A DNA stretch of 64,000 nt from Zygnema circumcarinatum SAG 698-1b. Its lineage: Eukaryota > Plantae > Zygnematophyceae. The notes beneath the pieces are model-generated. The model was given only the letters and a program-made list of their open reading frames with translations. It did no database searches and had not been told where the DNA came from. Numbering within the stretch: position 1 is the first letter of the stretch; each line of letters starts with the position of its first letter. The position numbers were made by a program, and so were the translations under genes. Location: NCBI GenBank assembly GCA_037447605.1, contig CM074811.1, positions 1,550,001 through 1,614,000 on the forward strand. Reading direction: 5' to 3'. Positions 17,185-52,651 of this stretch are shown here, one piece after another.

Positions 17185-17238
17185 CCAATCAGGGATTGCC
17201 ATGTTGGCACACCATCTGACGTGGCAGACTGAGATTGG
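17185..17238. promoter_or_regulatory. 54-bp inverted CCAAT/CCAC module, copy 1
   Basis: ccaatcagggattgccatgttggcacaccatctgacgtggcagactgagattgg, lying between the NDX and translin starts. Same length and motif positions as copies at 28631, 49394 and 52598. Confidence 0.7.
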
Positions 17239-17380
17239 CCTATTCCAGCTCGGAATTCCAGCTGGCGCCCTGCAGATGCAGGATGCAGCTCGCTGCTGTA
17301 AGGCGCGGAGGGAGGCCCTGAAGGAGTCCCTGAGGGAGGGAGGTGCATGGGGCGGCGGTAGGGGTACGACTGCAAGTCGG

Positions 17381-20300
17381 ATGGCCGAAAACGTGATGGC
17401 CCTATTTGAGAGCTTCGGCGCGCAGCTCTCAGAAACCAATGATGTGAGGGAAAGGATCAAGGCTGTGGTGACGACCCTGGACACCACCGTGCGCCAGATG
17501 CAGGCGGCTCTGCCCCCCGTATACAGCGGATCAGCAGCTCTGGGTGAGACTATTGACTTGCTGAGGGGGACAAAAAACCAGAAGACAGATGCCATTGTGT
17601 GATGCTTGTCTTCAGCATAGAGTTGATTAGTCAATGAGGGGCATATGATCTTCGTGACTCAAATATGAATGACTCGGTCACCGCTACCAAGTTCAATTCA
17701 GGTTGAATGGAATTCAGGCTCAAGGTGGTTTGGGAAATCCAGTAGTGCAGGCCGTGGAGCATGTCAAACGCCTCTTACCTTTGTTGCGAGAGTCGTATAA
17801 GGAGTTGGCGAGCATCTTGAAGGAACGACCTGGGGAGTATTACAGGTGCACTCCAAATACTTGTAATCAGCTCACTTAGATTACTTTTGTTCTCGTAGTT
17901 TTCGGTTGTGTCGTCATTTTTTTCCATTTAAAAAAAATCTATTCGTTTGCAGACACTTTTATGATAGTTATTGAGCAAAGGAGTCCTCTAAAAAATTCTT
18001 TCGTCTGCAGCCTCTTCTTTCCTTTGCTCCTCTGCTTGAACTCCTCTGAGTCTTTTGTAGAGCAAAGATGAGCAGAGGTTGAAATCTAGTTCTTGCTTAA
18101 TGTAGGCCGCTTGATGTTTATATTAGAAGGGGGTTGAGCACATGTTTGAGTTTTAACTTTAATCTCTCCGCGTCTGGAGGTCATTTCAGACGTTGTACAA
18201 TAGAGGACATGATCTCATGTAAGCTTTAAACTGGCAAATTTCAAATTGACAGTTTTTGGGGTAATAAAGTTTCACAGATCGGACCATTAGACAAACCAGT
18301 CGACTGGTTGGCAACCAGTGGTTGCGGACCGAAACAACCATTCGACTGGTTTGGAACCAGTGGATGCCATTGGTTGGCAACCATTCGACTGGTTTGGAAC
18401 TAGTGGATGCCACTGGTTGGCAACCAGTCGAATGGTTGGCAACCAGTGCCGCCGGATCGAAACAACCATTCGACTGGTTGCCAACCAGTGGCATCCACTG
18501 GTTCCAAACCAGTCGACTGGTTGCCAACCAATGGCGCAGGACTGAAACAACCATTCGACTGGTTCGGAACCAGTGATCCAATGGTTGGCAACCATTGAAT
18601 TTCTGAAATTATGCCTTTTTGCAAAAATGGGTCATTTGTGTTTTTTGGTTGGTTGCCAACCGTTGACAACTAGTGTAACAAGCCTGATGCGTACAGATGC
18701 GTACGGATTCGTACAGCCGAATCGTACGGTTGTACGGGGATTCTGTACGGCCGAATCGTAATAGTTTTCTCCGAAACGCCGACGGCATTTTGGTGACTGT
18801 AGCGTTCAGTTCGCTACAACTAGTGATTTAATGGTTGCCAACCATTTGATTTAATGGATATAACCAGTCGACTGGTTGCCAACCAGTGCCGCCAGATCAA
18901 AACAACCATTCGACTGGTTGCCAACCAGTGGCATCCATTGGTTCCAAACCAGTCGACTAACCAGTCGACTGGTTGCCAACCAGTGGTTGCGGACCGAAAC
19001 AACCATTCGACTGGTTGCCAACCAGTGGCATCCACTGGTTGGCAACCAGTCGACTGATTGCCAACCAGTAGACGTCCAACCATTGCCATCCAATGGTTGT
19101 CCAATGGTTGCCGATCCACTGGTCCGAACTGTGTAAAGTTTTCAAGAATTCAACTTCTTAAGGAATTTGACAATTGTTTAGGTCTCTGCTTGTCACCTTG
19201 TGGACATTGGTCTGCACTCATTTTAAACAGCTGGTAGGGAAGTGCCTTGCCGAGGTATGACAAGCATTTTATTTTCTTCGTGAACTGCCTGCTCCTGATG
19301 AAGTCTATGGACATCTGAATGGTTTAAATAACTGCGGGATAAATTGCTGATAACTGGTTTTACCATTTGGGTTGTCCGGAAAGGAGTGAAAAATGCGCGT
19401 GCTCGTGTCGACCCATGATCGATTGTGAATTGAAGTCCTTCACCGTAAAAAAGGCCTCGTACTACTTTCGGATGGGATGCCTTTTTTGGCTATTCGTGTC
19501 TGATCGCAGTGGCAGGTAACTGATATGAAGAGGTGGTTATGGGGGCGCCAGATACCATGACCACTGGCGCACTCAGAACAACTCTGTCTCGTTCGTACTG
19601 GCTTTCATACATTGGTTGGAGCACGGCACGTTGTTGCCTCTCGTCGAGATGGAGGCGCTACTCAACTGTAAGTAACTGCTATCACAAACTGATCTGATGT
19701 GCCGTTGCATCATCTCTGAACCGACTGGCATCTTTAGGACAAGACTTTGAGCTTTCGTTTTTCTTAAGCTATTTGGCAGAAGGTGGTGTTGATAGGAGCT
19801 TCTTGCGCACAGTGGAAGGAGAAATGCTGGCGCTGACTTTGATACAGTTGAGAATCTTGCTTTTTGACTTTTTGCAAGAAATACGAGACAGGACTGACAA
19901 AACTTCCCATGTTGAGCATCACTGAGGCCATTGTCACTGTTTGAAGAAAGACTTGTTGAAAACCCGATATGCCTCTTCCAGTAGTCAGTCAAACCAGACA
20001 CTACTTCGCTTGTGTTACATTGGAGCTCGTATTGGTCGTTGCAGTGAATCACGAAGAATTTGGACTTGAGCTGGAGGACTATCTTGCAGGTATCATCACT
20101 GCCTGTAGGCCAGATTTATGGTGCCATTCTGTCAGATATTGGTTGTTTGCTTGACATTGAAATGTAGAACTATTAGGAACGTTTCTCATCTAGAGTGATT
20201 TAGCTTAAAAACAATTTGTCTGCGAAGTTATCTTAAGACGAGCTAGCAGGTTACTCTGCGATTTTTTTGCAATCAAATAGAAGTAACTTTTTTGTTACGA

Positions 20301-21215
20301 AAGCACACTGACCTGTGGAACCCGATCGGCAAATACAAGAAGCATGCACTGATTGGAGATTTGGCTGGATGGACGTGACGGATTGCAGGGTTGACCATGC
20401 TCTCAAGTGAATTGGTGAGCCACAAACCAACATCTGGAGAACAGAGTTTTGCACTAAATCGGGTGATGCTTTTGTTAAGAGTTGACTCTAGTGAAGCGGT
20501 AGCTTAGACTAGAACTAACTGTGCCTGCGTTTATGTGCAGCCTCGCTATGTGATCAACAGGGTGACAGCTGGCGATTACGAGTGCCCTCGGAGGGTTGCT
20601 GCCTTCCTTAACGAGCTCTTTGCAGGCTTTCGTCTTCTCAATCTCCGAAACGATTCGTTGCGGAAACGTTATGATGGTATGATAGCCTTCATTATCTTTT
20701 AACTCAGACAATGGGGCTGACCTCTCTGAAAGGTATTGGCGGCCTTAAAACGGGTTTCCTTTACTTTGTCCTGCTGGTGGTGAAGATCCCGTATTGGCAT
20801 TCTAGCTGCGACTCACCTACCTTATACTCCATCATTTCAACTGATAGCAGTTTCAATGGCTTGTTGGGTGTTCCTTCTCGCTAAGACTCTTCTAGCTTGT
20901 AAGGATTGTATTAGTTACAAGTATCGGTACTTTGCCAGTGATCAAGGGGAAGCAGTTTTCCAGCCTCCTCTCTGCTGGAAGCAAATGTGAATACCAGCCT
21001 TTTCAGACTATGTTTCTGTTGTTGCATGTGGGCTGAACAATTTGGTACTTGGGGCCTTTGTTGGCTGGGTGTGGGGGAGTGAGCTCTATCCAGGAATGAA
21101 GTACGACTTGAAGAGAGTGGAAGAGGTACTTTACGATGTTAAGATAAGGGGCCTCATTGGCGATGTACAACATAAGGGAGATGATGCTACTGAAATAGGA
21201 GGCGTGCAAGTATAA
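17381..21215 (+). CDS. TSN: Translin (C3PO subunit)
   Basis: Exons encode MAENVMALFESFGAQLSETNDVRERIKAVV, YKELASILKERPGEYYR|YHDHWR..FIHWLEHGTLL, LNHEEFGLELEDYLAG, LTMLSSEL, PRYVINRVTAGDYECPRRV..FRLLNLRNDSLRKRYD and GMKYDLKRVEEVLYDVKIRGL; stop at 21213-21215. In-frame upstream ATGs make the start uncertain. Confidence 0.96.
18273..19133. mobile_element. 861-bp non-autonomous DNA transposon (hAT-like: 8-bp TSD, short TIR) in translin intron 2
   Basis: TSD TAAAGTTT at 18265-18272 and 19134-19141. 14-bp TIRs CACAGATCGGACCA and TGGTCCGAACTGTG with one mismatch. Internal arrays include four perfect copies of the palindrome AACCAGTCGACTGGTT. Confidence 0.9.
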
Positions 21216-22225
21216 GTGGTGTGATCTGTACAGTTACCTTTTTTTGCTTCTTTCAATTTGCTTTTGTAAAAAAGTTTCTGTGAGTCGTGCAGTATACTTC
21301 GCCTCTATGGTTTGAATTCGACAAACCAAAAGTCTACGGTCTAGGTCTAACCTAAGGACTTTACAATGTCTGCCTCCTTGCTTGTACTGTTCCAGCTTTT
21401 CCCCTGAAACAAGGCTTGCTCGTATCCCTCTAGGAGTGCCTATCTGAAAGGAAAAACTACGAAAGTCTATATGTTTTTAAGATTCGCCCTTTTCCCCCGT
21501 CAGAGTTCGACTCCCTTTTCACCCTATGTCGTCATTTATAACAAGATGACTAAGTTTGTTTCTTCTGTAGAGTTGAGTCGATTCAAATGGGAAGTTCAAC
21601 ACAAAAGTGCAGAGCTTCCCTTATGGTTTTCACAGCCGCAAGCCAAGGCTCACTCTTCCAATAACTAAAAAATTGAAACTGCAACTCTCTTTCCTCCAAA
21701 GTTCCTCACCTAAACCCCTATGCTGCCCTCCCTACAATTTCGCCAAAAAAGCCAAGTGACTTTAGGTTTGGTTCCAAGAATCACCTCGACCACAGATTTG
21801 TCGCCAGTGATACGTAAGGATGCACTGGCTTCAAAATGAGCTCCAAAAGGCACATTCCCGAAGACACATTCTTGAAAACAAGTATCGTTGTGATGGCGAC
21901 TGAATCTGATTATATTCAGTCCACTTCAAAGGGTGCTGGTCCTTCAGATGCAGCATGTAGTTGACTGTTCGAAGACTGTCGAAGTATTTTGAGCGATCTG
22001 TATATTTCCTCTTGGCCCCAACCCTATCTTCTCGCCCAAACGCGAGGCAGAAACGACCCACACAAGCAAGCACAAGGCCTGTTTGTGAGTCACGAGCAGT
22101 GAGTAACCTTGAGACCAAACTTGTCTTCGCGGCCTGCTTGGAACTTCAGCAATCTGTTGCCCTTCGTCATTGCCAGCATTTCAGGCTTGAGAACTGCAGC
22201 TAGAGAAGCAAGCAGGCAGGCCAAC

Positions 22226-22240
22226 GGGCGGGCGGGCGGG
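22226..22240 (+). other. Canonical G-quadruplex motif (GGGC)3GGG
   Basis: gggcgggcgggcggg: four G3 tracts with 1-nt loops. Confidence 0.5.
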
Positions 22241-22316
22241 CAGACATTATTTCGTTTCGTTTCGCCATCCGCACGTCATGGAGATTTTTTTTGTTTTTTT
22301 TTCTCCATATTATCGG

Positions 22317-22700
22317 GAGTCAGACCTTGACCATCGCCAAATCAATTTCGTAAGCCTGTCGGGTGAATTAAGCATTGGCTAGGTACGCATTTCGGTACGG
22401 CTGTGTACGGCGGAGCCCTGGATCCCGACCCGGAATTCGTACACGAAAGAACTGACTTTTTGTATAAGCAATTCGGAAATTTCGTAAGCGATGGTCAAGG
22501 TTTGACTGGAGTCAGACTTAGCACATGGCCAAATGAACTTAGTAAGCCTGTCGGGCGAATTAAGCATTGGCTAGATACGCATTTCGGTACGGCTGTGTAC
22601 GGCGGAGCCGCGGATCCCGAGCCGGAATTCGTACACGAAACTTTGACTTTTTGTATACTAAATTCGTGAATTTAGTACGCTCCGGGCTAAGTCTGACCCC
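22317..22700. mobile_element. Two tandem ~190-bp MITE-like units upstream of TFIIE alpha
   Basis: Unit 1 has inverted ends 22319-22337 and 22488-22506 (19 bp, one mismatch). Unit 2 has inverted ends 22511-22522 and 22686-22697 (12 bp, perfect). Both begin GGAGTCAGAC and share a ~115-bp near-identical core (22350-22465 vs 22542-22656). No clear TSD. Confidence 0.75.
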
Positions 22701-22883
22701 CCCTATTGTAAGGGTGGCTTTATTTTTGGGACTTTTTTTATGAAGTTTTATTTTCAGTACTTACGGACTTTTTAAATAAATCCCGTAGTTGAAGATGCCT
22801 TTCGGGGCCAGGGGACTGCGAGCAGGAGCAGGAGCAGGAGCAGGCCGGGGGGCGGAGGGCGGAGGGCGGAGCGGGGTGTCGCC

Positions 22884-25800
22884 ATGACGAGCCTCGACCC
22901 GTTCCGCAAGTCGGTCACGCGCCTCCCTTCTCCCTCCTGCTGCTTAGAGTATAGCCTTCCCAAGGTTAGGGTTGAGGTTTCAAATCCCTTTTTCCGCTTG
23001 AGATTTGGTTTCTCAATTAGGTCAAAAGAGTAAACAACAAAGCTGGCCTGTTACTAATCAACCTACGTTAATTAGGCTATAGGGCGAGAGATAGGATTGT
23101 GTTTATGGTTAGGGTTAGAGTTAGGGTTAGGGCTAGGCTTCATAGGATGAGGCCTAAGCATTTGAGGCGGAGCTGGTGCTGATTGTGCTGCTAGAACAGA
23201 CTGGTGAAGCTGGTGGCTCGCGCGTTCTACGATGAAGAGATTCCGCCGAGGGATACGAGCAAGAGCAAGGCAGAGAAGGCAGACAATCGGGGAAATGCAG
23301 TAGTCATTCTCGACGCCCTTGTGAGGTACCTCTCTCATCTTGCATGAACCTTCGATTTTCACGTTATGCTCAATCACCCTTTGTGCTGGTCTTCTTAAAT
23401 AGTACTAATGAACTATTCTTCTTGAGGTTGCGGTTAACAACATGCATTCCAGGAACATACAATTTGTTTTACCTTAGTCTGCGACATGGCACTGCAGATC
23501 TTCTCTGGCAAGGGCTGCGGTTCCTTGTTCTGTCAGCCTGTCTTTCTTGTGTTGCCTCTAGCATGTTTGAATTTTAAGGGGACTCTAATCTCTTTTATCC
23601 GGGCCTTATCAGAAATTTTAAAGTCGGTAAAATATTATGTTGAAAAACTTACAGCATCCTGTTGCCGGTCCTGCATTCCGAAAGTAATGCAATGTAATTA
23701 GCTCGTTCCTTCCGAGCCAGGCTCTCCTTTAGGAAGACTCTTCTCCAGATACACTTTAGATGAGGGGCATCCCTTAATGCTAGTAGATGTCCATCTGCTT
23801 TTTCAAAATTTCCCTTGAAAATGATCCTGTTTCTTGTTTGGCTTGCTATAGCCATCGTCCTTTCACGGTTTACGGTAATACCCAGGTCTGTGAACACATT
23901 TTGGTATTCGAAATGTTCAATTCGAGATGAATTGAACAAGTGAATCGGGAACGAACCGATCGTTACTCAATCTCCCTGTAGCTGCAAATTGGAAGTTTCG
24001 AACTGGCGGATTGCAGTTGCGCATGGTCCCCATACAGTGTTCGTATTTTGTATTGTCCGAAGTGCAACAGGTTTGGACAAAGTTCAATTACATTAGAACA
24101 AAAAACCAATCTTCTTATGCCAACTGTCACTCAGTGTCTTTTGGCATTGAGACTTAAGATTCAAATGGGTTTTTTACTTGAGCTTTCCAAATTATTATTT
24201 TCCCAACTTGCTCAAGTCGGTGGTTGGTAGGGTAGTACAGCATGTGAGGATCAATGTCACGAATTTCCTGTCACATGCATTTTACGTCCTATCTATTTTC
24301 TGTACTTTTAGCTGTATAGCTTTCTTTTAAATTCCATATTTGTGATTTTTTTTGTGAAGACGGCAATGGATGAAAGAAGAAGAGCTCGCGCGTCAACTGC
24401 ACCTTCATCCCAAGCAGTTGCGCAGGACTCTAAGAGCTCTCCAGGAAGATCGGCTCATTGTGCGAGAGCAGAGGAAAGAGGTGAGTCAGACTGCATTACC
24501 ATCAATTGGCATATTTTTTTGTTCTTGAAGAGCAGTTAACTCTCTTACCACAATGTAGACATTCCCTTTTTTTATTTATTTATGTCATCTATTTTAGAAC
24601 TATGGAGATTTGTTCAAGCCATTCTATAGAACGTTGCATTTGAAGCAGGCAAGCCTAAACTGGATTGCACTAAATAGCAGGGCCTCTTCCAAATGTTTCT
24701 GAGTCGTAGTTGAAGTCTTGAAGGAGTTCCTAAGACTCCCTGTGATTTTTGACAACTCATTCAAGAGTTGACAAACGGAATCACATGGAGTGAATTCACA
24801 AGTGGCTCCAAGACATTGGGATTCTCATAATTATAAGGCGTAGGGGCCATATAGTGGCTCCTGGGGGTTGCTATCTAACGGGCTCTTAGGTTTTGTCACC
24901 ATGCAGAATGCCCGCACAGCCAAGAGAGTGAGGCAGGCAGTTGCAGCAGAGACCGGCGAGGAGGTAGCACAACAAGATGACGGCGTGGAGGAAAAGCTGA
25001 AGCAGCATGAGTACTCATATTGTGCCCTGGACTATGGCCAGGTACAGGACAGGTGATGAGAAGAGGTGATGAGAATGGGCGAGAAGCTAAAATTTGGGGT
25101 GCAGTAGAAAGCATTCGCATAATTTTACAATTGTATGCCTCTCTTTTTTATTATTATTTTTCTACTTTTTCGTTTCCTTGAGTTGGAATTCTTGTGTCGC
25201 CTTCTCTGAGTGCGTGTGGTGCTTCGTGTTACAGGAGTGATTGTCTTAGGGACCCCTCGTAGACCTGATGTCATGTCTTGCTGGTTTTGATGTCTCTTGT
25301 TTAGAGCCTTCCGTTTGTCATGCTTTTTTTTTTTTTCGTGATGGTGTTGCAGGTTTATGATGTCATTCGTTATAGGCTTTTGCGGGCCAAGAAGAAACTC
25401 AAGGATGAACTGGAGGACCGCAATGTCCTGCAAGAATATGTCTGTCCCAATGAGCCGTGCAAACAGCGGTGAGGTTTACTGCAGTATGCAGGACAGCGAA
25501 GTTATCAAAATTTAATAAGGGGATGTATGGACTACTGAAGGAGGAGAGAGCGGTTGATTTCACACGTCATTACAGTTGGGACTTGCCTACTATGAGTGAT
25601 GACAGTGCCATCTGCACTGCAGCCGTCGCTTACCGTTTCCTGCATTCTTTTCAATTTTCTTCTACTGGATTGCTCTTTTTTGGTCCAAAGTTGTCCAGCA
25701 GTTTAAGCTTGGTATTGAAATGCATGGGAGAACGTATCCTTTCTCATTGAGATATTGGGTAATTGGGCAGATACTCTGCACTGGATGCAGCGAGACTGGT

Positions 25801-28167: not shown

Positions 28168-28237
28168 CGTGGTTACCCATGCTGATGTTGTCCGTGTAGA
28201 TTAGGTGGCATCATCGCCATCGTGAGGTCAATGCCAC
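28168..28237 (+). repeat. Dispersed intergenic element, copy 2 (core CATCGCCATCGTGAG)
   Basis: Core at 28212-28226, flanked by the 7-bp inverted arms gtggcat and atgccac. Confidence 0.75.
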
Positions 28238-28630
28238 ATCATGCTTTTATAACCTGTTAGCTGTCTTGGAGACAACGGCGAAACTGGATACATGCACAAC
28301 AGCCTCTAGGTTTCTATTCTGGCCGAAGTTCAGTTCCAGTTCACAGTAAATGGGACCAGCGAACGGCCCGCCGCGTCCGCCACGCTTTCCACTTTTCTCA
28401 AAAGTCAAACGGCCAAAGTGCCGCCGCAAGATGCCAAGATTCCGCCCCTTGACAAATGGCAGCCTCTGAGTCGTCCTTTTTCGCCTCGCTTTTCGCGCCG
28501 ACCACTCTTCACCGTCCGATCCGCCACGTGGCGTCCGCTCGGCCCCGCCGTGACGCGCCCTCGTCGAGGTGGAGGCGGCGCAACGGCCCAAGAGCCGAGT
28601 CGCCATTGAAGAGTACCCCGTACATTGGAT

Positions 28631-28684
28631 CCAATCACGACGCGCCACATCGGCACTGTGTCCTGCGTGGCAGGCTCCGATTGG
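28631..28684. promoter_or_regulatory. 54-bp inverted CCAAT/CCAC module, copy 2
   Basis: ccaatcacgacgcgccacatcggcactgtgtcctgcgtggcaggctccgattgg, about 110 bp upstream of the EamA gene. Confidence 0.7.
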
Positions 28685-28791: not shown

Positions 28792-31662
28792 ATGGCCGGG
28801 CACGGGTACGGACATGGCGGCATACATAGGGCCATGCGACACTGCATGCCTGCGCCTGTTGCAGAGAAGAGCTTGCATTCTGCGGCAGCCATGGCGGCAG
28901 CTCCCGCCCTTGCGCCTTGCAGCGCCAGGCTCGTCTGTCAATACAGCTGCAACGTTGCAGGATCGAGCTGCAGGCCCGCCTGCCAGGCACGGAAAGGAGA
29001 TGCTGAGGAGTATCAGCGTCGGAAGAGGTCCGGGCGGAAGGTACGCGAGGCCTCTCGCGGGACGTATTCGAATGATGCGGGAGTGAGGCAGTCCTGCAGG
29101 CAGCCTCCATGGACAGGCATCCATTTGCAGCATGTGAACGTTCGGCAGAAGCCGCAGCCGCCTATTGTATGGCAGAGAGACCGCGGAAAGTTTGCGAAAA
29201 CTCGGAGGGGGCGTGGCCCTGCTACTCCGAGAATGAGGAGAAAGGAGGCGGCTCTTGCTGCAAGAGCGGCTGCTTGGGGTCTGACTGTAAGCACAGATTG
29301 CTGTTGAGGGTTTTGGGATTGATCTTCAAAATAGATTTTTCTTTTTTTCGTCTATTTCCCTTTTAATGAATTTTTAGTTAGTTCGGCTGACTGTGGCAAG
29401 AACATGACGATCGCTACCTTCACTTTAGGATTAAAGGTGTGCTTTTTTTCTTTGGATTGTTTCTGAATCACTGTAGGTTTCTCCTTTCCACGCCGACATG
29501 AGCTCTCGGGATGGACCGGAGCACAGTGAAGTGAATCTGCACATTGTTCAAGTTGCGGAGGATGAGAAGATGGAAAGAAATTCGAGGAGAGCGAGAGGCC
29601 TCATACTTCTGAACCTTCTTGCAGCTCTGAATGGCACAAGTGCCGTTGCCACAAAGTTCATTGACGATGAAGCTCTTGATGTTTCGCCCAGCCTTATATC
29701 TCTTGTTCGCTTTCTATCAGCAGGTATTAACAGAGGTGGTGATGTGGCTTCTCACATGTGGAAATTCAATGTATATACCAAGCTCAAACAATTTACCTGT
29801 TTTCCGTTTTGAACATTCTAAACATGATTCCTTGCTGTGTGCATGAATTACTTGTCTTTGCATGAACAGATCCAAAGCTGTAGTCCTCTGCAGTTAACAG
29901 GATCACTGATTCTGCTAGTCGTGCCTATGCAGCCATTTTTTTCTGCCCTGCCTTGCCGACGGCTTTGTCTCGGAGAGATCCTTCTTTGGTGAAAGCAGGC
30001 GTGGAGCTCGGCCTGTGGAACTTTCTCGGGGTTTTGGCTATGGCGTCCGCCTCACCAGGCAGTTCTGATAGCAATGCCCCATTGCTGTTTGCATTTTCTG
30101 TAAGTAATCTCTTCCTATGCAGTGCCAGTCACATACAGCTTGCAAGTGATGGATCTGCAGCTTTGTAAAACCCTTTGAACTGTCACGTTGTCCATGTCTT
30201 GGCAGAGTCTCGGCAAGTTGCTGCCAGCACTGTGATTTCACTGATTATTAAAGGCAGTCAACCTTGCGTTTTTCTTTGTCGGTGTTTGGATTGACTTGAT
30301 TCGACAATTTTCGATTCGATTGTGTCCTCTCGAGGCTACCTCAGTTATTTGACGTCATCAGATGCCTGCAGGCTTAAATTTGCGCTGTTGGGTTTGACAG
30401 AAACTTTCTGTCTACCTTTTGTGCAGGTCCTCTTTCTACCCGGCCTGGAATTTTTCGCCGGACAACGTATGAACAAATCCTCGTGGCTCGCAACCATAAC
30501 AGCACTTGCCGGTATGTTTTCACAGTTAGTTAGCCTGATTTTCTGTGATCTTTTGTATGGATCAGCCAATAAAGAGGTGAGAACTCACGTGCTAACTCCA
30601 ACAGCCGTATTCGCGTATGCAGGCATGGGCGTACTTGAGGAGGAAAACCAAAACTGGCAAGGCTTTTCCATCCCACAATTGTCGGACTTCCGAGGAATAG
30701 TGGCTGCGTTCGCTTCTGCTGTTCACGTTTGGAGATCTGAAGCGCTGGGAAAAAAGTTTGACGCCTATCAGTTGACCGCGGTCCAGATGGGAACACTCGC
30801 GCTGCTTGGATGTGGATGGGAGATGCTTTCTGTCGGACTTTCCAAAGAAGGGCCAGAAGATATATTGCAGCAACTCCAGTTGCTTCCCTGGGCTCCTTTA
30901 CTTTATGGAGGTCTGATCTGTTCCGGCCTCTGCAATTGGTTAGAGCTGAAGGGGCTCCATGCAGTTCCTGCGTCAACGGCACTGTTTGTATATACAACTA
31001 TTCCACTCTGGGGGGGCTTTTCTTCGTTTCTCGTTCGCGGGGAGATTCCTGCTCTGTCGGTGGCACCCGGTGCTGCAGCCATCCTTTTCACTGTGTTCCG
31101 GGCACAGGCTTCCTTCATGGAAAGGGTGGAGACGCCAAGCCATGGCCATCCTGAGGGCCTCAGCAGGCAAAACGAATCCTCCTCTTCTTTCAATGAAGAA
31201 CGTCTCAAAGCAGTGGAGGCACAAACCGCAGCTACAAGCAACCTCCAAGCGGCGTTTCTCACCTCGCAACTGAAGTTTCCATTTTACAGCATGCAAGCAA
31301 AGCGTCTGTTGGCTGAAGTTAAAGTGAAGATCAGCATAGCGAAGGCATCTCTTGTTTCTTTGCAGATCTCGGTGGCAAGCTGGGCTGACCATTGGCACAG
31401 TGCTCATAGCAGCCTTCAGATTCCAGGCATCCCAAGTGGCGGATCTTCAACGATGCCAGATGCGCTAGGCCGCCTGTTTGCTACAACTGCTGACACCCTC
31501 TCTGCTGGAATCTTAGCTGCCACGCAGCTATCACAAATGGTTGAGATTTTGCCGGCAGGACTGGTCGCTGCTCTGGGATGTACAGCTGAGATTTTTAAAG
31601 TCACTGTGACAGCTATCGCGGTAGCAGCAAGCACCACATCGGGATCTGATGCCTCGGACTAG
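28792..31662 (+). CDS. EamA/DMT-family membrane transporter, probably plastid-targeted, with C-terminal extension
   Basis: Basic Ala/Ser/Arg-rich first exon (start 28792 or the MAAAPA ATG near 28890), then GLILLNLLAALNGTSAVATK..SLVRFLSA, KAGVELGLWNFLG, VLFLPGLEFFAGQ..WLATITALAGMGVLE and LTAVQMG..LPWAPLLYGGLICSGLCNWLELKGLHAVPASTALFVYTTIPLWGGFSSFLVRGE. The pattern fits two EamA repeats. Confidence 0.85.
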
Positions 31663-43600: not shown

Positions 43601-46600
43601 TCTCACCTCACCTCTCTCGCAGCGCAAACAATGTGCAGCTGAACTCGAGTTCAGCTGAGACCTTATTGAACACAAACCCAGCCGGCAATGGACAGATTCC
43701 ATTTCAACGAAATACCGACTCCAGAAACAAGTTAATTCCTTTGTATGCATTCAGAGGCATTAGAGAAAAAAGGCGTCAGAGCACTCAGACAATCATGCAA
43801 CAATCGAAGCAACTTGTTACCTTCAGCTCTGCCAGTTGTTGCTCCATTCGAGCCTTGTCTTGTTCCACTGCAACGCGAGCCAATTCTTGTATCTCCAACG
43901 CCTGTCGTAGTCGTAAAACCTCCGCCAACGCTTGTTCTGCTCGAGCTTTTTCTTTCTGAAGGGCCGTTTCAAGGACCTGAATTTTGTGTCTCTCCTCAGA
44001 TAGCGACTCCCGTTCTATCCTTAGTGCTTCGGTCAAGTCCTTCACTATTCCATCAGCACTACCGTCAACAAACTCCGAGTTTTCAAGAGACACCTGCTGA
44101 ATGGAACTTGGAGGGTGCTGTATTTGACTGCTTTGCTTGAGGTCCACATTTCCCATCACTACCTCATCCAAAGTGCTTTCCTCTTCAGAGGGTCTCTGTC
44201 GGCCGTCAGATGATTGAGACCCTTCAGGATCTGAGACGTGTAAACCAGCACCCTGCTCGCCTTCCGGCTGCCTAACAGCCCGTACCCACGGTGAACAAGT
44301 TCTATCGACAAGGTCTACCCTCCCTTCATTAGCATATGTAGCACTTTGAATCTTAGGCTGTCTTGTGCTTACGCTCTTCCTCTTTTTACGCGTTTCTGCC
44401 CGTCCTGCAGACGACCGCAAGTTGTGAGATTGATTCAACTCCTTGCTAATCACCGTCTCAGTGTCTGATTGTTGGCGATGTTTGGGTCCTTCCACTTTGT
44501 GATGGAGTCCTCTGCTGCTCGATTTCCCATCCACTCTGATCCACTCACTATCATCCTTTAGTGTTCCCTGCTCTTTGTTGCTAGCGATCTCTTGTTTCTC
44601 GGCTACTAATGGATACACCTCTGATTCTGATTCAGAACTAATATCGCGCCTTCTGTGATCCACGGTATATTCTGCTTCAGGCACAGTCACTAACGAACCA
44701 TTGAGCGATTTCTTAAGAGTCTCGGCGGCCATTATCTCAAAAATGTCATCACTATCTGCTATGACCTCCAAAGACGGGAAAGTATCAACTGCTGAGCACG
44801 ACGGTGATGACGACGGTGATGACATAGACTCTGGATTTCGATTCAGACATGCCTGAACACCATCGTCTTCAGTGCTCTCCAAATTCTTAGTTCCTCCATC
44901 CTTCCGGTTCAGCCCCTCCCTTGCATTTCCCTTTCTGTCCTTGCGCTTGTTCTTACTTCTGTGACAACCAACTCGAGCAATTGCTGGTCTGGTCGCTTTA
45001 ACATTCTCTTCATCAAATAAGCTTAGCAACTCTGCTTGCCTTTTCGCCACTTCTTCCTCAAGAGCAAGCCATCGTTTTTCCTGCATCCTCAATAACAGCA
45101 ATAAAAAAAGCTTATCAATACATAATAGCAATGTACACTGTCGTCATGGTCTGGTGTTAGCATTCAATGCGCGCAAACGATGCAAGCTAATTACCAAGTA
45201 ACTCGCTGGAGGATGGCACACATTAACTCAGAAAATGGATTTGCCCATGCAGTTGCAGTAAGACAGTTTTGTGAAAGAAACGCAACCAGTCAAAATTGCA
45301 CTGGGACTTGATTGGACAGTGATGGATCAGAAACTTTCAGCAAAAGCAGCAAGACTGATCAAACCTTGCGACTGGCCTTCGACTCAGAAATAGAGCTACA
45401 TAGAGATATCTTACAAGGACAGTGGAAGCTGCAGTTCCCTTCAGAGCTTCCATATGCGCGGTTCTCGCTCTGCGACAGCGCTTAGTTACATCCGCTCCCT
45501 TGTCACAAAGAAGCACTCTGCACGGAGAACATGCAATCTGTGAGCTACAACGCTATCAACTATTGTTTCTGTGCCGACATTACAAGTACTGTAAGAAAGG
45601 TCAACCCCACATATGAATAATGCGAAGACCCGACCCATCAGACGACTTAAACGTTTGCCACATAAATCAAACCAAACCTTCAATTCATAACAGACATATG
45701 ATACGATTTTGAACTGAGTCCCCTGAAGAAAGCATACCCGCCAGCTGTCATCCTAGAGGTAAATACACTCAGATCCAAGTTTCTCTATTTGGCTACAGTG
45801 AGGTCCGAGGAGAGGGCGCTTTGCTTACAGACAGTCTGCAGAATTACTTCGTGCACCATGATGCAATGCTGAGCATCCATCTGTGTCCACTGCATTGATA
45901 TCCGGCCCCCCTTCTAAAAGGGCTCTTGTCGCATCCACCGCGTTGCGAGCCACAGCATGCATCAGCGATGACTTGCCCTCTGAAGTCTTGGCATCTATAT
46001 CTGCACCAGCCTGCCAACCCCACAAGTACTGTTTAACAACCAGAGTAAAGTGGCTATCTTCCAATACTGAAAACAACGAACAGATGAAGTTACAACGAAC
46101 ACCTAGCAAATTCAGAACAGAGGGGTGTGCTGGTATGGAATTTTCGGGGGCTTAAAAATAAACATCCCAGTGGCACTCGATGGTCTACACTTATAGAAAA
46201 ATTCCCCAGCTTGGAGCCCCACAAAACCAGAAAGCAATGTAAAGTTGCACTAGCGTAACCCGGAATGTTGCATATATGTGTTGAACCCACCTCCAACAGG
46301 AGATGTATGGCCCCAGCGTGCTGCCCTTCCGCAGCCGCAATTAGAGGCGTCACTCCTCCATGTGATCTAGCATCCACAGTTGCTCCTGCATCCAGTAACA
46401 CCTTAATGCATTCTTCGTGCCCATTGTATGCCTGCAGAAACAAGTTCATGATAAACAGTGACGTTAGTGTCTTGAAGTCTGGCAGTCAAGAGACAGGCAG
46501 ATTAAAAATATTACACTAAAGCTAAAAAATGTGGAGATGGGGAGCAGAATGACTTACAGCAGCAATGAGGGCAGTCACACCAACTCGGTCCTTCGCATCT

Positions 46601-49133
46601 GGCTCCGCTCCCCCCTCCAGAAGAATCTTCACACAACTGCACAAACAACAAAGGCACAGACTACCGTGAAAGGAGATTCCATGCAGCTGAAGCATCGAGT
46701 GACGAAGAGGAACAACACATTCCTTACATAACTTGGAGGAAGTTGACTTCAAGAAAGGAATGCTACTTCTCTTCTATCTGAGTGGCTAATGAATGATCAC
46801 GGAAGTGGACAGACAGTATCAGGGGATGCACAAATAAGGCGGAGTATGACTATGTCGAGCATATGTACGGGCAACATCAGTTAGGCACTCACTCGGCATA
46901 TCCACTCTCAGCAGCTACTGTAAGGACTGGCCACGGATTCTCCAAAACCCTTGGTCTGCATGCCATAGGCCCAGAATCTCAAAGCACTTAATGATAGAGA
47001 CCTCCCTTAATGACTAGGGTCGTTGACGTAACAAACCTCTCCTTACAATCACTAAACATACATACCCGGGTGCTCCCTATGGAGTAACAGTTCACAGTGA
47101 AGCCGTCGGTGCTAAAGTTTACCTCAATAAGAGTGAAGGTTGTAAGGACAGGGATTGCGGAAACTTACGTTGAAAAGCCACTGTCCGCAGCTGCCAATAA
47201 GGGCGTTGCTCCATCGCAATCGTGAGCTTCAACGGAAGCCCCATTATTCAACAGAAGCCGCGCAACTTCCAAGTGGCCATTGCGACATGCCGCTGTAATG
47301 CACAAAAACGAGAATTAAAGCCTTTTTCGGGATGCGTCCAAAGGCGTTCAGAGAATTGACGAACAGAGGACCGACATGCAACTGAGCTAGACCTTGTCTC
47401 CCCCGAGTGGACAACTAATTTCGCTATTTCTCAAATGCAACGTTTAACTAGAGAAGTAGAGAACTAGAGAATACACAGAATTCAAGTCTCAGCTGTGTTT
47501 CTATACATGCAGACCAAAACTATGGCTATGGTATGCATGGCGATGCAACCTATAGTGGTATGATCATGGTGCACGCACTTTGCCTGTTCACAGATAGTCT
47601 ATCACTTGCCTGATAAGGCATTCCCAAGTGTTGCTGCTCTGCTCGATCTCCAGAGAGGGTCAGCAGTTTCTGGAAAAAGGTTCAAGGAGGATGCGACAGC
47701 GGCAAGATTTCCAACCGCTGATAAGTTAATCAACTCTTCGTAAGGCGCCTTTGAGCCATCGCCAAGGAGCGACTTCTGTAGCCCCTGATTCGTCATGCAT
47801 AGCCTTTCGTTTGAAGCAAGATGTTCCTTCCACTCAGAATTAGCTAGTAAGGCAATAGTTGCATCCATGTCGCCTCGAGGTACAAGCGACCCATCATGTC
47901 CGTGCACTGTGCCATTATTGATATCTACAGCAAGTTGCCTGGCTGTTCTCCCAGCTTTGTCTTTAAGAAACGGGTTTGCCCCTGAAAAACGAGGACCAGA
48001 CACAGTTTCAATACAAACGTATGAAAAGCATAACAAGCTACAGCTATTATCAAGTTACATTGTGCTTTCATTGAAGATACTATGTCTAGACAAGAATTTA
48101 GCGCTCAGTCTGGTGAGTAGACTAACCACGCTCCAACAACAATGCTATACACTGGCCCCTGCCGTATCCAGCCGCCATATGAAGCGGAGAGAAACCATCT
48201 TGATCCCAAGCGTTAGGATATGCCCCTGCAAACAAAGTTCAAATTGCCCAAAATCAGTGCAAAGTAAGCATCTGACGATGTACAATCATGCAGCAGACTC
48301 GTTTGTTGTGCGCACAAAAAATGCAACCATCGCCTGCAGTTGAACTGTAGCAAACACATGACAGAACTTTTCAGTTTAATTCTAATACACGCACAAACAC
48401 CGGCACACTCCCGCCAACACATTCTGAGTCATTGTGCTCGCCTTGTCACATGCTCTTTAGTGCCACATATGCCGCTGTATCACCTCCTTTAATAACTAAA
48501 ATCACATAACGAGCTGGCGAAGCAATGGAAGCCCCGGTCCGACAACAGCTCACCTGCATCCAAGAGAACTTGAGCACACTCCTGAGACGCCATGCCACAC
48601 GTGAAATGCAGAGCTGTTCGCCCTCTCTCGTCTCGACCGTTGATTCCCGTATAGTACTCACTGCCTGGTGCGACTTTCGCTACTTCCTCAGTTGCACCAG
48701 ACTCTGAAGGCAGACCAAAACAACGAGTCAGTTAGCTAGGCCAGCGCCACACTAAAGAAACCACGAAAGCCAAACAAAAAATGTGCTGGAAAGTCGGAAT
48801 GGTACTCCAAAACCCGCATTCTTGGGGTAAGCCTCTGAGCTAACGTAAGCATTGCCTCTGTTCATGCCTGCAAGAAGATCCTCAACCTTAAACACACTCC
48901 ACTCCAACACGCTCACCACCTTCCAACCTCACTGAGCCCACTCCATTCCCCGTCCCCGAACTAGCACCTTTCTCGCCGAGCTGCTTCTGCATTTCCACCA
49001 GAATGCGGCGCACGCGCTTTATCTGATTCTTCTTGGCCGCATCTATCAGGTTGATGACTGCATCCGCCGAGTCCTGCCATGCCTCCCGCTCCCCTCGCGC
49101 AGGCCCTGCCGAGCCTGGTCTAAGCGGCGGCAT
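40671..49133 (-). CDS. Large ankyrin-repeat / coiled-coil protein
   Basis: Start MPPLRPG at 49133. Ankyrin exons [87 protein letters not shown] and [24 protein letters not shown]; a long coiled-coil exon ~45100-43818; further in-frame exons ~42810-42285. Whether ORF 41627-40671 is the last exon is not fully resolved. Confidence 0.8.
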
Positions 49134-49393
49134 TTTGCCTGGCCCTCCCTTCTCCTCCCCTCCCCTCTCCTCTCCCTCCCCTTCAGCCCTCTGTCTCCTC
49201 CTCCCTGAGTCTGCGCCTGAACGTGGACCTCCTCTCCCTCTCTCCCTCCCTTGCAGGAGCAGCCCTGTGCTCGGCCGCCCGGCGGGATCCGGCACCCTCA
49301 GGCGAGTGGCGGCCCGTGGCCGCAGGGATCCGTCGGGACGGGCTGGCAGCGGCCACGCCAAGAGGGGAGCCGCCGCCCTATCCGGGACAGGGG

Positions 49394-49447
49394 CCAATCA
49401 AACCGCGCCACGTCGGATAAAAGTGCTACGTGGCACGCGTTGATTGG
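49394..49447. promoter_or_regulatory. 54-bp inverted CCAAT/CCAC module, copy 3
   Basis: ccaatcaaaccgcgccacgtcggataaaagtgctacgtggcacgcgttgattgg: two exact CCAAT-N9-CCACG elements facing each other, about 260 bp upstream of the ankyrin gene ATG. Confidence 0.75.
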
Positions 49448-49508
49448 CTCCTGTCATCGACTCTCGCACCCACAAAAGTGAATTGACCAAGCGATGGGTT
49501 GCATGCAT

Positions 49509-49582
49509 GGGTCTCACGATGGCGATGGGATGCCATCCTATGGACATGGACATGGATAAAATGGGAAAATGGGGAAACCACG
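49509..49582 (-). repeat. Dispersed intergenic element, copy 3, within a CATG-rich tract
   Basis: Reverse complement of the core (ctcacgatggcgatg) at 49513-49527. The flanking cgtggtttcccc...tccatg similarity extends to the other copies. Confidence 0.7.
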
Positions 49583-50012
49583 AGAAAGCATGCACGCATG
49601 CATGCTACCATGGCTCCATGAGACGCATGACTTATGCATTGCTCATGGGATGAGCCACACATGTCCGTTCGAGCCTCATCCATGAGTCCATGGCTGCATG
49701 TCATGAAGGATGCTGATGCATGGATGCATGTTGAAAGACGGGACGGCACATTGGAGGCCAAGCTCAAGGAGATAAAAAGCATGTTTCTGATAATGGTGGG
49801 GACGTCTTCGGACAAGACAAGAAGAGTGAAAGGAAAGTGCGCCAAGTTCTCTACTATCTGACTTCTAGCTACTAGGAATCAGCATACACCCCTCCCTCCT
49901 CAGCTTTGCGGATACTCAGCCCCTTGCATATGTCTACTCTAAACAGAAGCCTAATCTTGAAGACACTCCTCATGTATTGACTTCAAAAACAAAATTTTGC
50001 CCGGCAACACCC

Positions 50013-51337
50013 TTAAGGAATTGAAAAAGGCGACTTCGCTCTGATGAAGTCTTTCAGAAGGCGCTTCTCCTCGTCTATCTTCCTCTTTTCATGGAGAGAG
50101 GCAGGCTTCTCTTTTCGCTTCTCAGCCAGTATCCACTGCAAGATTTCTCTCCACTGCTCTGCTGATACAACGTTCTTACTTTCAGGGGGTCTGTGGATAG
50201 GTATTTGAGCTTCTCCTTCAGCCACAGGCGGCGCCACAATTGTGGCTTCCTCAGCAAGAGTTGCAGTGTCACTATCTGTGGAGGGCACATTGTGAACATT
50301 CACTCCATCCTCAGACTCAAGAGGTAAAGGTTGATCATCATGGTCCTTGGACTGCTGCTGTTGGCGGTGATCCTGAAGGTTAGCAGCAGTGCGCGACGCC
50401 TCCTCTTTTGCTTCCTTATTCTCTCCCCCTTCCTTGTCCTTGTGGTGACGGCGGGGTGGTGCTCTAAAGAACATGTACCCTGCACCAACTTAATGTCCAC
50501 GTCATTACAGGAAGAAAAAATGTCTACGAGTCTATCACAATCACCAAAACAAGTCGTGCTTTAATCTCACTGTGTCCAACGATACAAACTTGGAAGCAGC
50601 TAAGCAGGGGCTAATAGTGACAAACCACACCACTAGTATATCTTCATACTACTGAAGCTTTCTGAATGATTTTCATAGAAAGCTCTAAAATCTCTTATTC
50701 AAATAGCAGTGCGTAAATTGCTACACTGTACTTGATAGCTTAACATTAGTGTGCACTGCAAAGAATTACTTAGCTTTGCATATTGTGGGTGTACGACATG
50801 ACAAGCAAGACCTTGCTGCTGGAGTGAATCCTGTTGAAGACCTCATCTGGCGGTTTGAAACTACAATGACATAATCAATCAACCTCAGTCAACCTTTTGG
50901 AACAGTGCATCTGTCGGAGAGTGCCGCCACTTACCGGCCACAAGAAGGTTCACTCCAAGAAGAGCGCCATAAATGCCTCTTGCTCTATACAGAAATGGGG
51001 GTTTCGGAGATGTATAGGGCGTGCTCGAGCTGCTGGCTTTATTGTTCATGACTTTTACAGGTTCACCTTGAAGACCAAACAGGCGCACCAGTAGAACATG
51101 AGGGCACACAAATTGGCTGCGGGTGCGCATGGTGAAACATTCTAACTTGAATCTGTACTTTTAGAAAATCAAAGTACTCAGTAACAAAGCAGGTGGAACA
51201 ACCACTCCCAAAGCAGAAAATCCTGCAGCCAACCCCTAAGCATTTTTTGAGGGATTGTCGCAAGTACCGGTTCCCCGCTTCAGCCCTCTGGACTTGCGAG
51301 CAAGCAGCTTGAGGCCCGAGAGCCGCCCACCACTCAT
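50013..51337 (-). CDS. Small single-TM protein with a charged C-terminal motif (uncharacterised, plant-type)
   Basis: Exons MSGGRLSGLKLLARKSRGLKRGT|GEPVKV..IYGALLGVNLLVA|GYMFFRAPP..SAEQWREILQWILAEKRKEKPASLHEKRKIDEEKRLLKDFIRAKS. The final motif resembles an uncharacterised plant family as I recall it; unnamed. Confidence 0.75.
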
Positions 51338-52597
51338 TTTATTTACTGAGAGCTGAGTGCCAAGATCAGCGCACTACAATCCTGCACGAGAATTCCACAA
51401 GCACGGCACAGGGCCGTACTGCTGAGTGAGGTGCAGGGAAATATGACCGACCGACCGACCTTGAAGATCTTGAAGTCCCCAATTAACAATTGACTTGAGG
51501 TCTACATTCAAAAATCACCGTCTTTGTGCTCATGAAATACGACGAAGGTGGAACCAGAATCAAATTCTCTTCGTGCACCATGTATCTCTATTTTTTCAGA
51601 TTTATTTACTTATGCTTCTCATTCGGCCAGTATTAGAATGTCGAGACGCTATCAGCAAGGACTGCTTCAGGCACAAAACGTTCAAGCAAGAACATATTTA
51701 ATTCCGACCGGTCACAGGCTCACCAAGGGCACAATTAACTTGAACGGAATACCCATAGGATCAATTTGCAGAAAGAAATAATTCGAAATTTTCAATCATT
51801 AGATTTTTTATGAAATAAATTCACTAACAAGCAGTCTCACGTGCTTTCCCCAGTCTTGAAAAAGCGCCTCAAACTTCTCAAGTACCGAGATTTTCCCAAG
51901 CTTTTGTGAAATTCCAACGCGCTCGCTGGTCTTGAAGTGTATCTGCTATTCGAAGCGCTCACATTTTGAGGACAGTGCCGGGGACAAAGGCGAGTCCCGG
52001 CCAGAGGAATAGGATGCTGCGCCAGTCAGTCAGTCAGTGCTGCTGCTGCTGCTGCTGCTGCCTGCCGACCTCACGGCCCTGCAGTTCTCCGCGATGACGC
52101 CTGCCTTCCCTGCCGGCCTCCCTCCATGCTCAGCTTACTGCCAAGGCGCCCTCTCATAGACGCCAGTCCCGTCCCTAGAGAGGACCGTCCCGGGACTGTG
52201 CAAAATATCGTATCGAGACCGTACCAAGTGATATCGTATCGTAATGATATATCGAGGTGTCACGCGTGCGTGACATGACTCACATGTGTACGGACGGTAT
52301 GGTTTTCAGGTCCATCGTCGGTCCTTACACCCTAGGTCGGCCGTAGGGGTTAGGTCAGGTAGGTCGGTAGATCGGTAGGTCGGTTAGTAAGTGCCTGTAG
52401 TCCATTCGGCGCACAGCGGAGACCGTTGGCGGAACTAAATTGACTTTGCGTCTTTCGTCGTGCCACGTGGCTAGATATAATTCGTCCACGTAGGCAATCC
52501 GTTTCTCTAGCTCTGCTTTGCTGAGCGTCATGTCACGAGACGGACAAATCATGGCCTGCCACGCCATCCAGTTTTGCATACGTGTCAAAGTGTGACT

Positions 52598-52651
52598 GGC
52601 CTGATATTTTGCCATGTTGGCAAAATTGTTGACGTGTCACACCATGATTGG
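52598..52651. promoter_or_regulatory. 54-bp module, copy 4 (left CCAAT box lost)
   Basis: ggcctgatattttgccatgttggcaaaattgttgacgtgtcacaccatgattgg. Inner motifs and right GATTGG sit at the same offsets; TBCE divergent promoter. Confidence 0.55.

Follow-up and report, generated by a model that had tools for sequence, protein, structure and literature searches.

A convergent 54-bp pair of ERSE-I-type elements as a candidate promoter module of ordinary algal genes

Introduction

The ER-stress element ERSE-I has the bipartite form CCAAT-N9-CCACG and is found in animals and land plants, where it is bound by NF-Y together with ATF6 or XBP1 or, in plants, with bZIP28 or bZIP60. NF-Y prefers CCAAT boxes within the context RRCCAATCA/G, and these boxes usually lie at about −60 to −100. 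To our knowledge, hardly any work has addressed promoter grammar in the algal relatives of land plants.

In Arabidopsis, a CCAAT-N8-GCCACG(T) composite is documented in the sections consulted of two studies (PMC5499772, PMC11472169). Bipartite CCAA-N9-GCCA and CCAA-N12-ACGT elements in the same plant peak near −100, are insensitive to direction and are enriched in tunicamycin-induced promoters (PMC5499772). The consulted part of the COBIND study reports that sites of the Arabidopsis G-box bZIPs HY5, ABF1/3/4 and GBF2/3 are accompanied, at ERSE spacing, by a motif for NF-Y (PMC11472169). Human NF-Y modules include CCAAT–E-box pairs at 10–12 bp with USF/MAX, as well as double-CCAAT promoters, and are also present in repeats such as LTR12 (PMC4889920).

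Here, we focus on a 64-kb stretch of algal DNA (the window) containing four copies of a 54-bp unit in which two ERSE-I-type halves face each other. If many unrelated genes share a module of such strict geometry, it would be a rare, directly testable case of transcription factor stereo-alignment (NF-Y with bZIP), and would serve as a constitutive promoter part ready for use in transforming these algae. It would also show the recruitment of a stress element into general promoter use, possibly aided by transposons.

Sequence and geometry of the dyad

Re-reading of the sequence bore out the four gap-free modules described in an initial annotation, including the missing left CCAAT box of the last (table 1). 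Their ungapped alignment (n = 4) gives the consensus CCAATCA-N6-GCCAYRTYGG-N12-CGTGKCA-N6-GATTGG. Each dyad comprises two facing CCAAT-N9-CCACG halves, with the CCAAT boxes on the outside and the ACGT boxes on the inside. The two CCAAT boxes are oppositely oriented, with 49 bp between their centres, and each is paired with its own ACGT site. A half consists of an RRCCAATCA/G CCAAT box and an ACGT-core YGCCACGTCRG site with exactly nine bases between them. Judged by motif flanks, the bases around CCAAT fit the NF-Y preference, and CCACGTCR fits ATF6/bZIP28-type factors. Several ACGT boxes read CCACGTCA/CCACGTCG, the ATF6/bZIP28-type extension.

Table 1. Positions of the modules, related sites and transcript features in the window.
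Feature	Position	Strand	Description
Module 1	17185..17238		54 bp; left half CCAAT-N9-CCATG (one mismatch); right half exact, 17220-17238, minus strand
Module 2	28631..28684		54 bp; left half CCAAT-N9-CCACA; right half exact, 28666-28684, minus strand
Module 3	49394..49447		54 bp; both halves exact
Module 4	52598..52651		54 bp; no left CCAAT; left ACGT-type box GCCATGTTGG; right half CCAAT-N9-ACACG, minus strand
Degenerate second dyad	52545..52599		55 bp; CAAAT-N9-CCACG ... CGTGT-N9-ACTGG; adjoins module 4 upstream, 2-nt overlap
Single exact half CCAAT-N9-CCACG	4692..4715	+	ACGT box forms a perfect G-box palindrome, GCCACGTGGCA
Perfect G-box palindrome GCCACGTGGC	28523..28532		99 bp upstream of module 2
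Perfect G-box palindrome GCCACGTGGC	52462..52471		between gene B and TBCE; 74 bp upstream of degenerate dyad
TBCE transcript contig starts	52709..52731	+	three runs: 52709, 52724, 52731; one preceded by adapter sequence; approximates TSS
Gene B first exon	51962..52145	−	RNA coverage stops at ~52145; splice joints with CT..AC ends

The ERSE geometry previously proposed for the halves proved to be an exact ERSE-I match in its two-box sequence, its 9-nt spacer and its extended plant form, CCAAT-N8-GCCACG(T). The modules differ from ERSE-I in that they pair two elements convergently within a constant 54 bp and lie before genes other than ER chaperones. They resemble the Arabidopsis NF-Y/G-box-bZIP composite, in which the distance from a CCAAT box to an ACGT-core site is fixed and which occurs mostly in promoters and beyond stress genes; however, that composite is described singly in the consulted part of the source, with no mirror-image pair or fixed dyad length (PMC11472169). 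With human NF-Y modules they share a CCAAT/CACGTG-type stereo-alignment, a pair of CCAAT boxes in each promoter that encloses E-boxes, and promoter enrichment, but a 49-bp separation in opposite orientation lies outside the human double-CCAAT classes of 19, 24–28, 35–37 and 43 bp (PMC4889920).

The two halves are unequally preserved: the start-proximal half is intact in all four modules, but three have a degraded distal half, with decay mainly by CpG-to-TpG/CpA changes. Given this decay, the second half may be dispensable, and the dyad may be partly a historical footprint. A placement of both ACGT sites on one helical face was dropped, since the cores are 18 bp apart while the CCACG pentamer centres are 21 bp apart, and the phasing depends on the centre chosen.

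Enrichment and spacing

Chance expectation for the two motif patterns was derived from dinucleotide-preserving shuffles of the window. The pattern CCAATC-N7-GCCAC occurs six times against 0.03 expected, a count reached in none of 100 shuffles. A 41-nt right-hand pattern matches exactly at four sites and, with two mismatches, also picks up module 1 read in reverse, against 0.00 expected, and the expectation for whole modules is 0. Among CCAAT/CCACG pairs within ±40 nt, the spacer is exactly nine in five of seven. Three facing CCAAT...ATTGG pairs have a total length of 54, where 0.06 would be expected for any one length; every other length within 20–120 has at most one, and divergent and tandem controls are flat. 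The initial annotation had proposed a genome-wide search for a sharp 54-bp spacing peak; within these 64 kb such a peak is present.

ERSE-I halves number five exact and seven more with one mismatch, or about one exact half per 13 kb. Set against 535 in the human genome, five per 64 kb is a roughly 450-fold higher density. Sites occur in about five of the ~16 promoter regions of the window, so the idea of a general promoter architecture holds for about a third of them, not for all.

Genes and transcripts

The translin ATG (17381) is 143 bp beyond the end of module 1, and the inferred 5′ end of the minus-strand gene NDX lies on the other side of the module. Module 2 stands 70–108 bp before the candidate ATGs 28754 and 28792 in the putative first exon of a gene for an EamA-type transporter; the conserved exons of this gene span 29929–30102 and 30427–31359. 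The start of module 3 is 259 bp before the ATG of an ankyrin-repeat gene (49133–49135, minus strand), and the module directly borders on the 3′ end of gene B. For TBCE, whose protein product carries a CAP-Gly domain, the first plausible ATG is at 52893, 242 bp downstream of the end of module 4. By annotation, none of the four downstream genes encodes an ER chaperone, in keeping with the earlier view that translin, the EamA-type transporter, the ankyrin-repeat protein and the tubulin cofactor TBCE are not classic unfolded protein response (UPR) targets.

Transcript starts were taken from assembled RNA contigs and are approximate 5′ ends only. The end of module 4 is 58–80 bp upstream of the TBCE contig starts, and module 3 lies 13–142 bp before the end of ankyrin-gene RNA coverage; promoter-proximal placement is thereby supported by RNA at two modules. 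The divergent gene B/TBCE intergenic region measures ~560 bp, and in run X10 a single contig spans it, reflecting genomic DNA or read-through. Two of the promoters had been called divergent: spliced RNA contigs confirm this for gene B/TBCE, while NDX/translin is inferred from minus-strand exons. The dyad as a bidirectional promoter is unsupported, as modules 2 and 3 face another gene's 3′ end on their far side. Nor does it appear to drive two genes, as each module is near one transcription start only, module 4 being ~450 bp from the start of the other gene.

Spacers, flanks and structure

Across the 24 spacer columns, identity between copies is 4–10 (mean 7.3) against 6 expected, a near-chance level at which the description of the spacers as unrelated is essentially right. 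Modules 1 and 4 share slightly more, namely the identical variant TTGCCATGTTGGCA and TGACGTG.

An alignment of ±100 bp flanks at the four sites revealed no homology beyond the module, with invariant columns inside it only. A window-wide repeat search grouped only the modules themselves (family D4), and no terminal inverted repeats or target-site duplications frame the four sites. The initial annotation had named flank homology and target-site duplications as signs of a transposon family; in their absence the copies are alike at the level of motifs rather than repeats, and a transposon or MITE origin in this window is rejected on the flank alignment and repeat searches. All four copies are exactly 54 bp, without an indel, while their spacers are at chance. 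The geometry is therefore constrained, whether the copies arose independently or by saturated divergence, and is apparently under selection.

Module 3 is embedded in a 70-bp true palindrome (49386–49455) with 28-nt arms that are 86% complementary, the only true extended palindrome among the four. Because it includes the spacers, it hints that this copy may have originated by inverted duplication or from a fold-back element. DNA-fold z-scores for modules 1–4 are −1.3, −0.6, −6.2 and −3.1, with module 4 in a different register. The modules have no match to an Rfam RNA family; the cleanest RNA run shows no coverage over them, or almost none, and they lie outside transcript coverage in run X16. 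A structured RNA or hairpin element is rejected on these grounds, and since hairpin potential is not shared, what the copies have in common is protein-type motifs rather than structure.

Dyads outside this genome

Metagenome contigs were scanned for the convergent dyad with a variable inner gap. A 53-bp convergent double ERSE was found before an animal-host GRP94/endoplasmin gene (contigs L013 and L048 and ~19 further loci) and is kept across many diverged copies. It has the same layout as the algal dyad, CCAAT-N9-CCACG ... CGTGG-N9-ATTGG, is one base shorter and lies ~270 bp upstream of the start codon. Unlike the algal modules, it represents a single orthologous promoter, that of a classical ER-stress gene, and its inner spacer and ~300-bp flanks are conserved, which points to conservation by descent rather than reuse at unrelated genes. 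The 53-bp peak was accordingly rejected as a general spacing preference. Nonetheless, this animal counterpart suggests that the paired arrangement may matter functionally beyond the algal lineage.

Other dyad lengths were singletons, or one locus assembled several times. The algal-type 54-bp form gave one exact match only, on a green-alga-like (chlorophyte-like) contig, L022. An exact-protein look-up of one window ORF returned no match, and the EamA and GT2 ORFs had homologues of no more than 72% identity, located on short contigs. Three contigs (fungal; a 5.7-kb metagenome scaffold; 2.2 kb) held no informative sites and are far too small for enrichment.

A lineage-specific architecture, as first suggested, does not hold at the level of the half-site: the consulted parts of the Arabidopsis studies contain the CCAAT-N8-GCCACG(T) composite (PMC5499772, PMC11472169), and the animal GRP94 promoter has a near-identical convergent dyad. 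The literature searched contained no description of an algal or palindromic ERSE dyad. The half-element is already known as ERSE-I; what is new is the fixed convergent dyad, its density and its use at non-ER genes.

Discussion

We consider the 54-bp unit to be a promoter-proximal cis-regulatory module of two convergent ERSE-I-type composites, serving as a constitutive platform for ordinary genes, and give this reading a probability of about 0.6. By analogy with ER-stress elements, an NF-Y trimer on each CCAAT box would recruit or stabilise a bZIP of the G-box/C-box-binding type on the neighbouring CCACG(T). Placed about 40–150 bp upstream of the transcription start, the dyad would act as an activating or nucleosome-excluding platform, and the half nearest the start bears most constraint. 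The functional module of facing composites put forward earlier stands in its geometry, motif-level copies and promoter position; occupancy by NF-Y and bZIP, like an activating effect, is predicted from motif sequence, and the ACGT box may instead be bound by a bHLH. The module seems to be a promoter building block open to reuse, rather than a switch reserved for stress.

That the pattern arose by chance, or from the composition of GC-rich promoters, is extremely improbable. The promoter regions of the window are indeed GC- and CpG-rich, with many ACGT-core motifs, but shuffles that preserve dinucleotides predict 0.03 and 0.00 where six and five sites were observed, and the spacing histograms are single sharp spikes; enrichment and spacing counts effectively refute it. 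An enlarged UPR-type regulon, with the four genes stress-induced through NF-Y and a bZIP28/bZIP60-like factor, would make the modules genuine ER-stress or proteostasis elements. The exact ERSE-I match and extended ACGT boxes agree with this, as does the enrichment of the same bipartite motifs in Arabidopsis tunicamycin-induced promoters (PMC5499772) and the conserved dyad before animal GRP94, and the EamA-type transporter and tubulin-folding cofactor would be plausible in a broad proteostasis set. Translin and the ankyrin-repeat protein, however, are not secretory-pathway genes, and the density of exact halves relative to the human genome is too high for a specialised regulon; we regard such a regulon as unlikely.

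Descent could also account for the fixed length, if palindromes were seeded by fold-back transposons or hairpin-mediated inverted duplication and selection then kept the gene-proximal half while the rest decayed. The palindrome around module 3, in which spacers and flanks pair too, would fit such a history, as would the palindromic form of the lone chlorophyte-like match, the CpG transitions in three of four distal halves and the variant common to modules 1 and 4; transposon-borne NF-Y sites are known in mammals, according to the consulted part of PMC12065363. Against it, homology ends at the module borders, terminal repeats and target-site duplications are missing, and unconstrained substitution to chance spacer identity should have brought indels, yet every copy is 54 bp. 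We hold descent as the source of the fixed length to be rather doubtful, although it is compatible with, not opposed to, a constitutive promoter module. A broader synthesis, offered tentatively and as something of a long shot, is that the 53–54-bp convergent double ERSE is an old, geometry-constrained enhancer unit, seen at animal GRP94, once in a chlorophyte-like contig and here in a streptophyte. In this lineage it would have been generalised from ER-stress genes to a large share of ordinary promoters; fold-back transposons may have dispersed the copies, which would later have lost all but the half nearest the gene.

Neighbouring sites

Related sites occur elsewhere in the window (table 1). 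The degenerate dyad beside module 4 scores 18.0 and 16.7 bits, while shuffles yield 0–2 matches of at least 12 bits per whole window. The single exact half lies ~230 bp upstream of a long minus-strand ORF (3210–4460), with its CCAAT on the gene side. The perfect G-box palindrome is present in three copies, against ~0.06 expected by simple arithmetic.

Sequence and spacing of the dyad

The four modules share one layout over 54 bp: CCAAT, 9 nt, CCAC(G/A) or CCATG, 16 nt, CGTG(G/T), 9 nt and ATTGG. The left CCAAT is absent from module 4 (52598), and our reading of the sequence agrees with the initial annotation at all four stretches, this loss included. From the box order and the 9-nt spacing, each half reads CCAAT-N9-CCACG, the layout of ERSE-I, which is an element of NF-Y plus ATF6/bZIP28. 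Chance is excluded as the origin of the modules: the pattern CCAATC-N7-GCCAC has 6 matches in the window where dinucleotide-preserving shuffles expect 0.03, and a 41-nt right-hand pattern is found with 0 mismatches at all four modules against an expectation of 0.00. The spacer is exactly 9 nt in five of the seven CCAAT/CCACG pairs lying no more than 40 nt apart anywhere in the window.

A test for a peak in spacing at 54 bp had been proposed; within the window, three facing CCAAT...ATTGG pairs have this total length (0.06 expected per length), every other length from 20 to 120 occurs at most once, and divergent and tandem CCAAT/ATTGG controls are flat. A weight-matrix scan gives 10 matches, against 0–2 in shuffled windows, and adds a single perfect half and a degenerate 55-bp dyad (see table). 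The spacers are, as first described, unrelated while the offsets are fixed: copies agree at 4–10 of 24 spacer columns (mean 7.3, with 6 expected), and all four modules are exactly 54 bp long. Constancy of length despite randomised spacers would place the geometry itself under constraint, with either an independent or a single origin of the copies.

Positions of dyads, half-elements, G-boxes and associated features
Feature	Position	Strand	Context
Module 1	17185-17238		translin
Module 2	28631-28684		EamA-type transporter
Module 3	49394-49447		ankyrin-repeat gene
Module 4	52598-52651		TBCE
Single perfect half	4692-4715		
Degenerate 55-bp dyad	52545-52599		directly upstream of module 4
G-box palindrome GCCACGTGGC	4705-4714		ACGT box of single half at 4692
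G-box palindrome GCCACGTGGC	28523-28532		99 bp upstream of dyad
G-box palindrome GCCACGTGGC	52462-52471		74 bp upstream of dyad
Gene B, spliced	exons 49455-50478, 50934-51064, 51266-51380, 51962-52145	minus	RNA contigs
53-bp convergent double ERSE	L013:5549-5601; also L048, L007, L008, L019, L024, L031, ~14 more loci		metagenome contigs

Anatomy of the halves

The consensus of nine halves is RRCCAATCA/G-N5-YGCCACGTCRG. The bases around CCAAT agree with the usual preference of NF-Y, and the inner box is a complete G-box/C-box-type site around an ACGT core. Perfect G-box palindromes number three in the window against about 0.06 expected by our own arithmetic. The CCAAT boxes are outermost in the dyad, so that a CCAAT lies nearest to the gene on whichever side the gene sits. 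All four modules have an intact gene-proximal half and three a degraded distal half, in which almost all changes are CpG transitions of GCCACGTCGG to GCCATGTTGG (twice) or GCCACATCGG (once); this pattern suggests that the proximal half bears most of the constraint. Judging from the sequences, dyads may begin perfect, as module 3 with its palindrome is, and later decay in the half away from the gene.

Gene context

Module 1 ends 143 bp upstream of the translin ATG, in a region that probably also holds the 5′ end of a long minus-strand NDX gene; NDX homeobox and Nodulin_C domains are encoded in the window. The translin intron contains nested direct and inverted repeats (18283-19072; units of 71–125 nt, arms up to 97% complementary) that match a hAT-like element, itself without an ERSE-type site. 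A local tandem duplication of 133-nt and 54-nt units, 74–90% identical and spaced by ~191 bp, occupies 22316-22697. Module 2 lies upstream of what may be exon 1 of the EamA-type gene; conserved exons of this gene begin at 29929, and its best named homologue is a moss protein. Together with the NDX homeobox and Nodulin_C domains, this homologue places the window in a plant-lineage genome.

Contigs from RNA runs were placed on 48200-54100, their ends serving as approximate 5′ ends only; one contig, from the run X10, crosses the intergenic region between TBCE and gene B, the minus-strand gene beside it. TBCE contigs from three runs start at 52709, 52724 and 52731 (one with adapter before it), 58–80 bp downstream of module 4. 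The degenerate dyad (CAAAT-N9-CCACG ... CGTGT-N9-ACTGG) adjoins this module, which gives the TBCE promoter a tandem pair of dyads; the ‘missing left box’ of module 4 coincides in part with the right-hand box of the adjoining dyad. Since gene B has its 5′ end at ~52145, the TBCE region is a divergent promoter; a short tandem array of TAGGTCGG (four copies, 52351-52384) also lies in this promoter/5′ region.

The longest 3′ end of gene B (contig end 49455) meets the edge of the module 3 palindrome exactly, which leaves module 3 alone between gene B termination and the next promoter. That promoter serves the minus-strand ankyrin-repeat gene, where RNA coverage fades across 49252-49381, 13–142 bp from the module. 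A CCCTC-rich tandem array in its promoter/5′ region (49143-49182) interrupts the RNA contigs at 49252. At 4692, the single half is ~230 bp upstream of a minus-strand ORF (3210-4460). By these positions every site is 5′ of a gene, and about 5 of ~16 promoter regions in the window, by our own count from ORFs and RNA joints, have one.

Repeat and structural readings

When the modules are aligned with 100-bp flanks in both orientations, invariant columns are confined to the 54 bp, and a window-wide repeat search recovers them as a weak three-member family comprising the module alone. Inverted repeats or duplications framing a module were found at none of the four copies. Flank homology and target-site duplications had been named as marks of a transposon remnant; the copies are without either, and on possible seeding by transposons the window is neutral. 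A true palindrome is present in module 3 alone: it spans 70 bp (49386-49455), its 28-nt arms are 86% complementary and reach 8 nt past each CCAAT, and its DNA-fold z-score is −6.2. For modules 1 and 2 folding does not exceed that of shuffled sequence, the small palindrome in module 4 is a different one, and an Rfam search of the window returned no matches. Because flanks, spacers and folds are not common to the copies, their common feature is the fixed placement of short protein-type motifs.

Interpretation and comparison with known NF-Y composites

We consider the dyad to be, with a probability of roughly 0.6, a functional promoter module under geometric constraint, in which the ERSE principle of NF-Y plus an ACGT factor would work at ordinary genes. 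Exact spacing, sharing of motifs alone and location 5′ of genes lend partial support to the functional NF-Y/bZIP module proposed in the initial annotation; its half is already known as ERSE-I. A history of palindromic seeding, in which the proximal half alone matters, is a possible but rather improbable account; the intact proximal halves and the palindrome of module 3 are consistent with it, and it is compatible with the promoter-module reading. That the modules reflect a greatly expanded stress regulon appears less probable still. The 64 kb of the window contain 5 ERSE-I and the whole human genome 535 (PMC5890977), a density roughly 450 times higher here. Arabidopsis motifs of the CCAA-N9-GCCA and CCAA-N12-ACGT type are enriched in tunicamycin-induced promoters (PMC5499772); the genes downstream of the modules in the window are ordinary ones.

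These Arabidopsis bipartite motifs have a preferred spacer, peak around −100 and are insensitive to direction (PMC5499772). An NF-Y-like co-motif accompanies the G-box sites of the bZIP proteins HY5, ABF1/3/4 and GBF2/3, the two together making an ERSE (PMC11472169). In human cells a CCAAT box and an E-box keep a distance of 10–12 bp, and the spacing in double-CCAAT promoters forms classes of 19, 24–28, 35–37 and 43 bp (PMC4889920). Within the accessible parts of these sources, none of the composites pairs convergent CCAAT boxes whose centres are 49 bp apart, as the window dyad does, and our literature search turned up no account of such a dyad from algae or other organisms.

Counterparts in metagenomes

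Scanning metagenome contigs with both halves exact and an inner gap of 4–30 nt gave 54 loci, 21 of which form the one sharp peak in length, at 53 bp. These 21 are homologous to one another and represent a single AT-rich eukaryotic promoter, with ~300 bp of conserved sequence, from host-associated metagenomes. In the contig L013 an endoplasmin/GRP94 gene lies downstream of the dyad (exons 7033-7230, 7755-7967 and 8096-8284; candidate start codon ~270 bp downstream), and in a comparison with structures an exon matches endoplasmin at E = 7e-19 and cytosolic HSP90 at about 1e-4. A convergent double ERSE of 53 bp, one base shorter than the 54-bp dyad of the window, thus precedes an animal gene of the classical ER-stress set.

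The exact length of 54 bp is matched at one locus alone (L022:8504-8557), fully palindromic, with the first ATG of an fn3/purple-acid-phosphatase-like ORF ~50 bp downstream. High GC (0.69), a scarcity of introns and genes for a PHYLLO-type MenD/MenC/MenH fusion and Las1 mark the contig as probably that of a green alga; in a database this large one such match could arise by chance, and the locus is therefore a lead only. Three ERSE-like halves and two GCCACGTGG G-boxes are packed into 59 bp of another contig (L017/L044:1746-1804), which is AT-rich and bears fragments of a plant-type copia reverse transcriptase; their geometry is unlike that of the 54-bp dyad.
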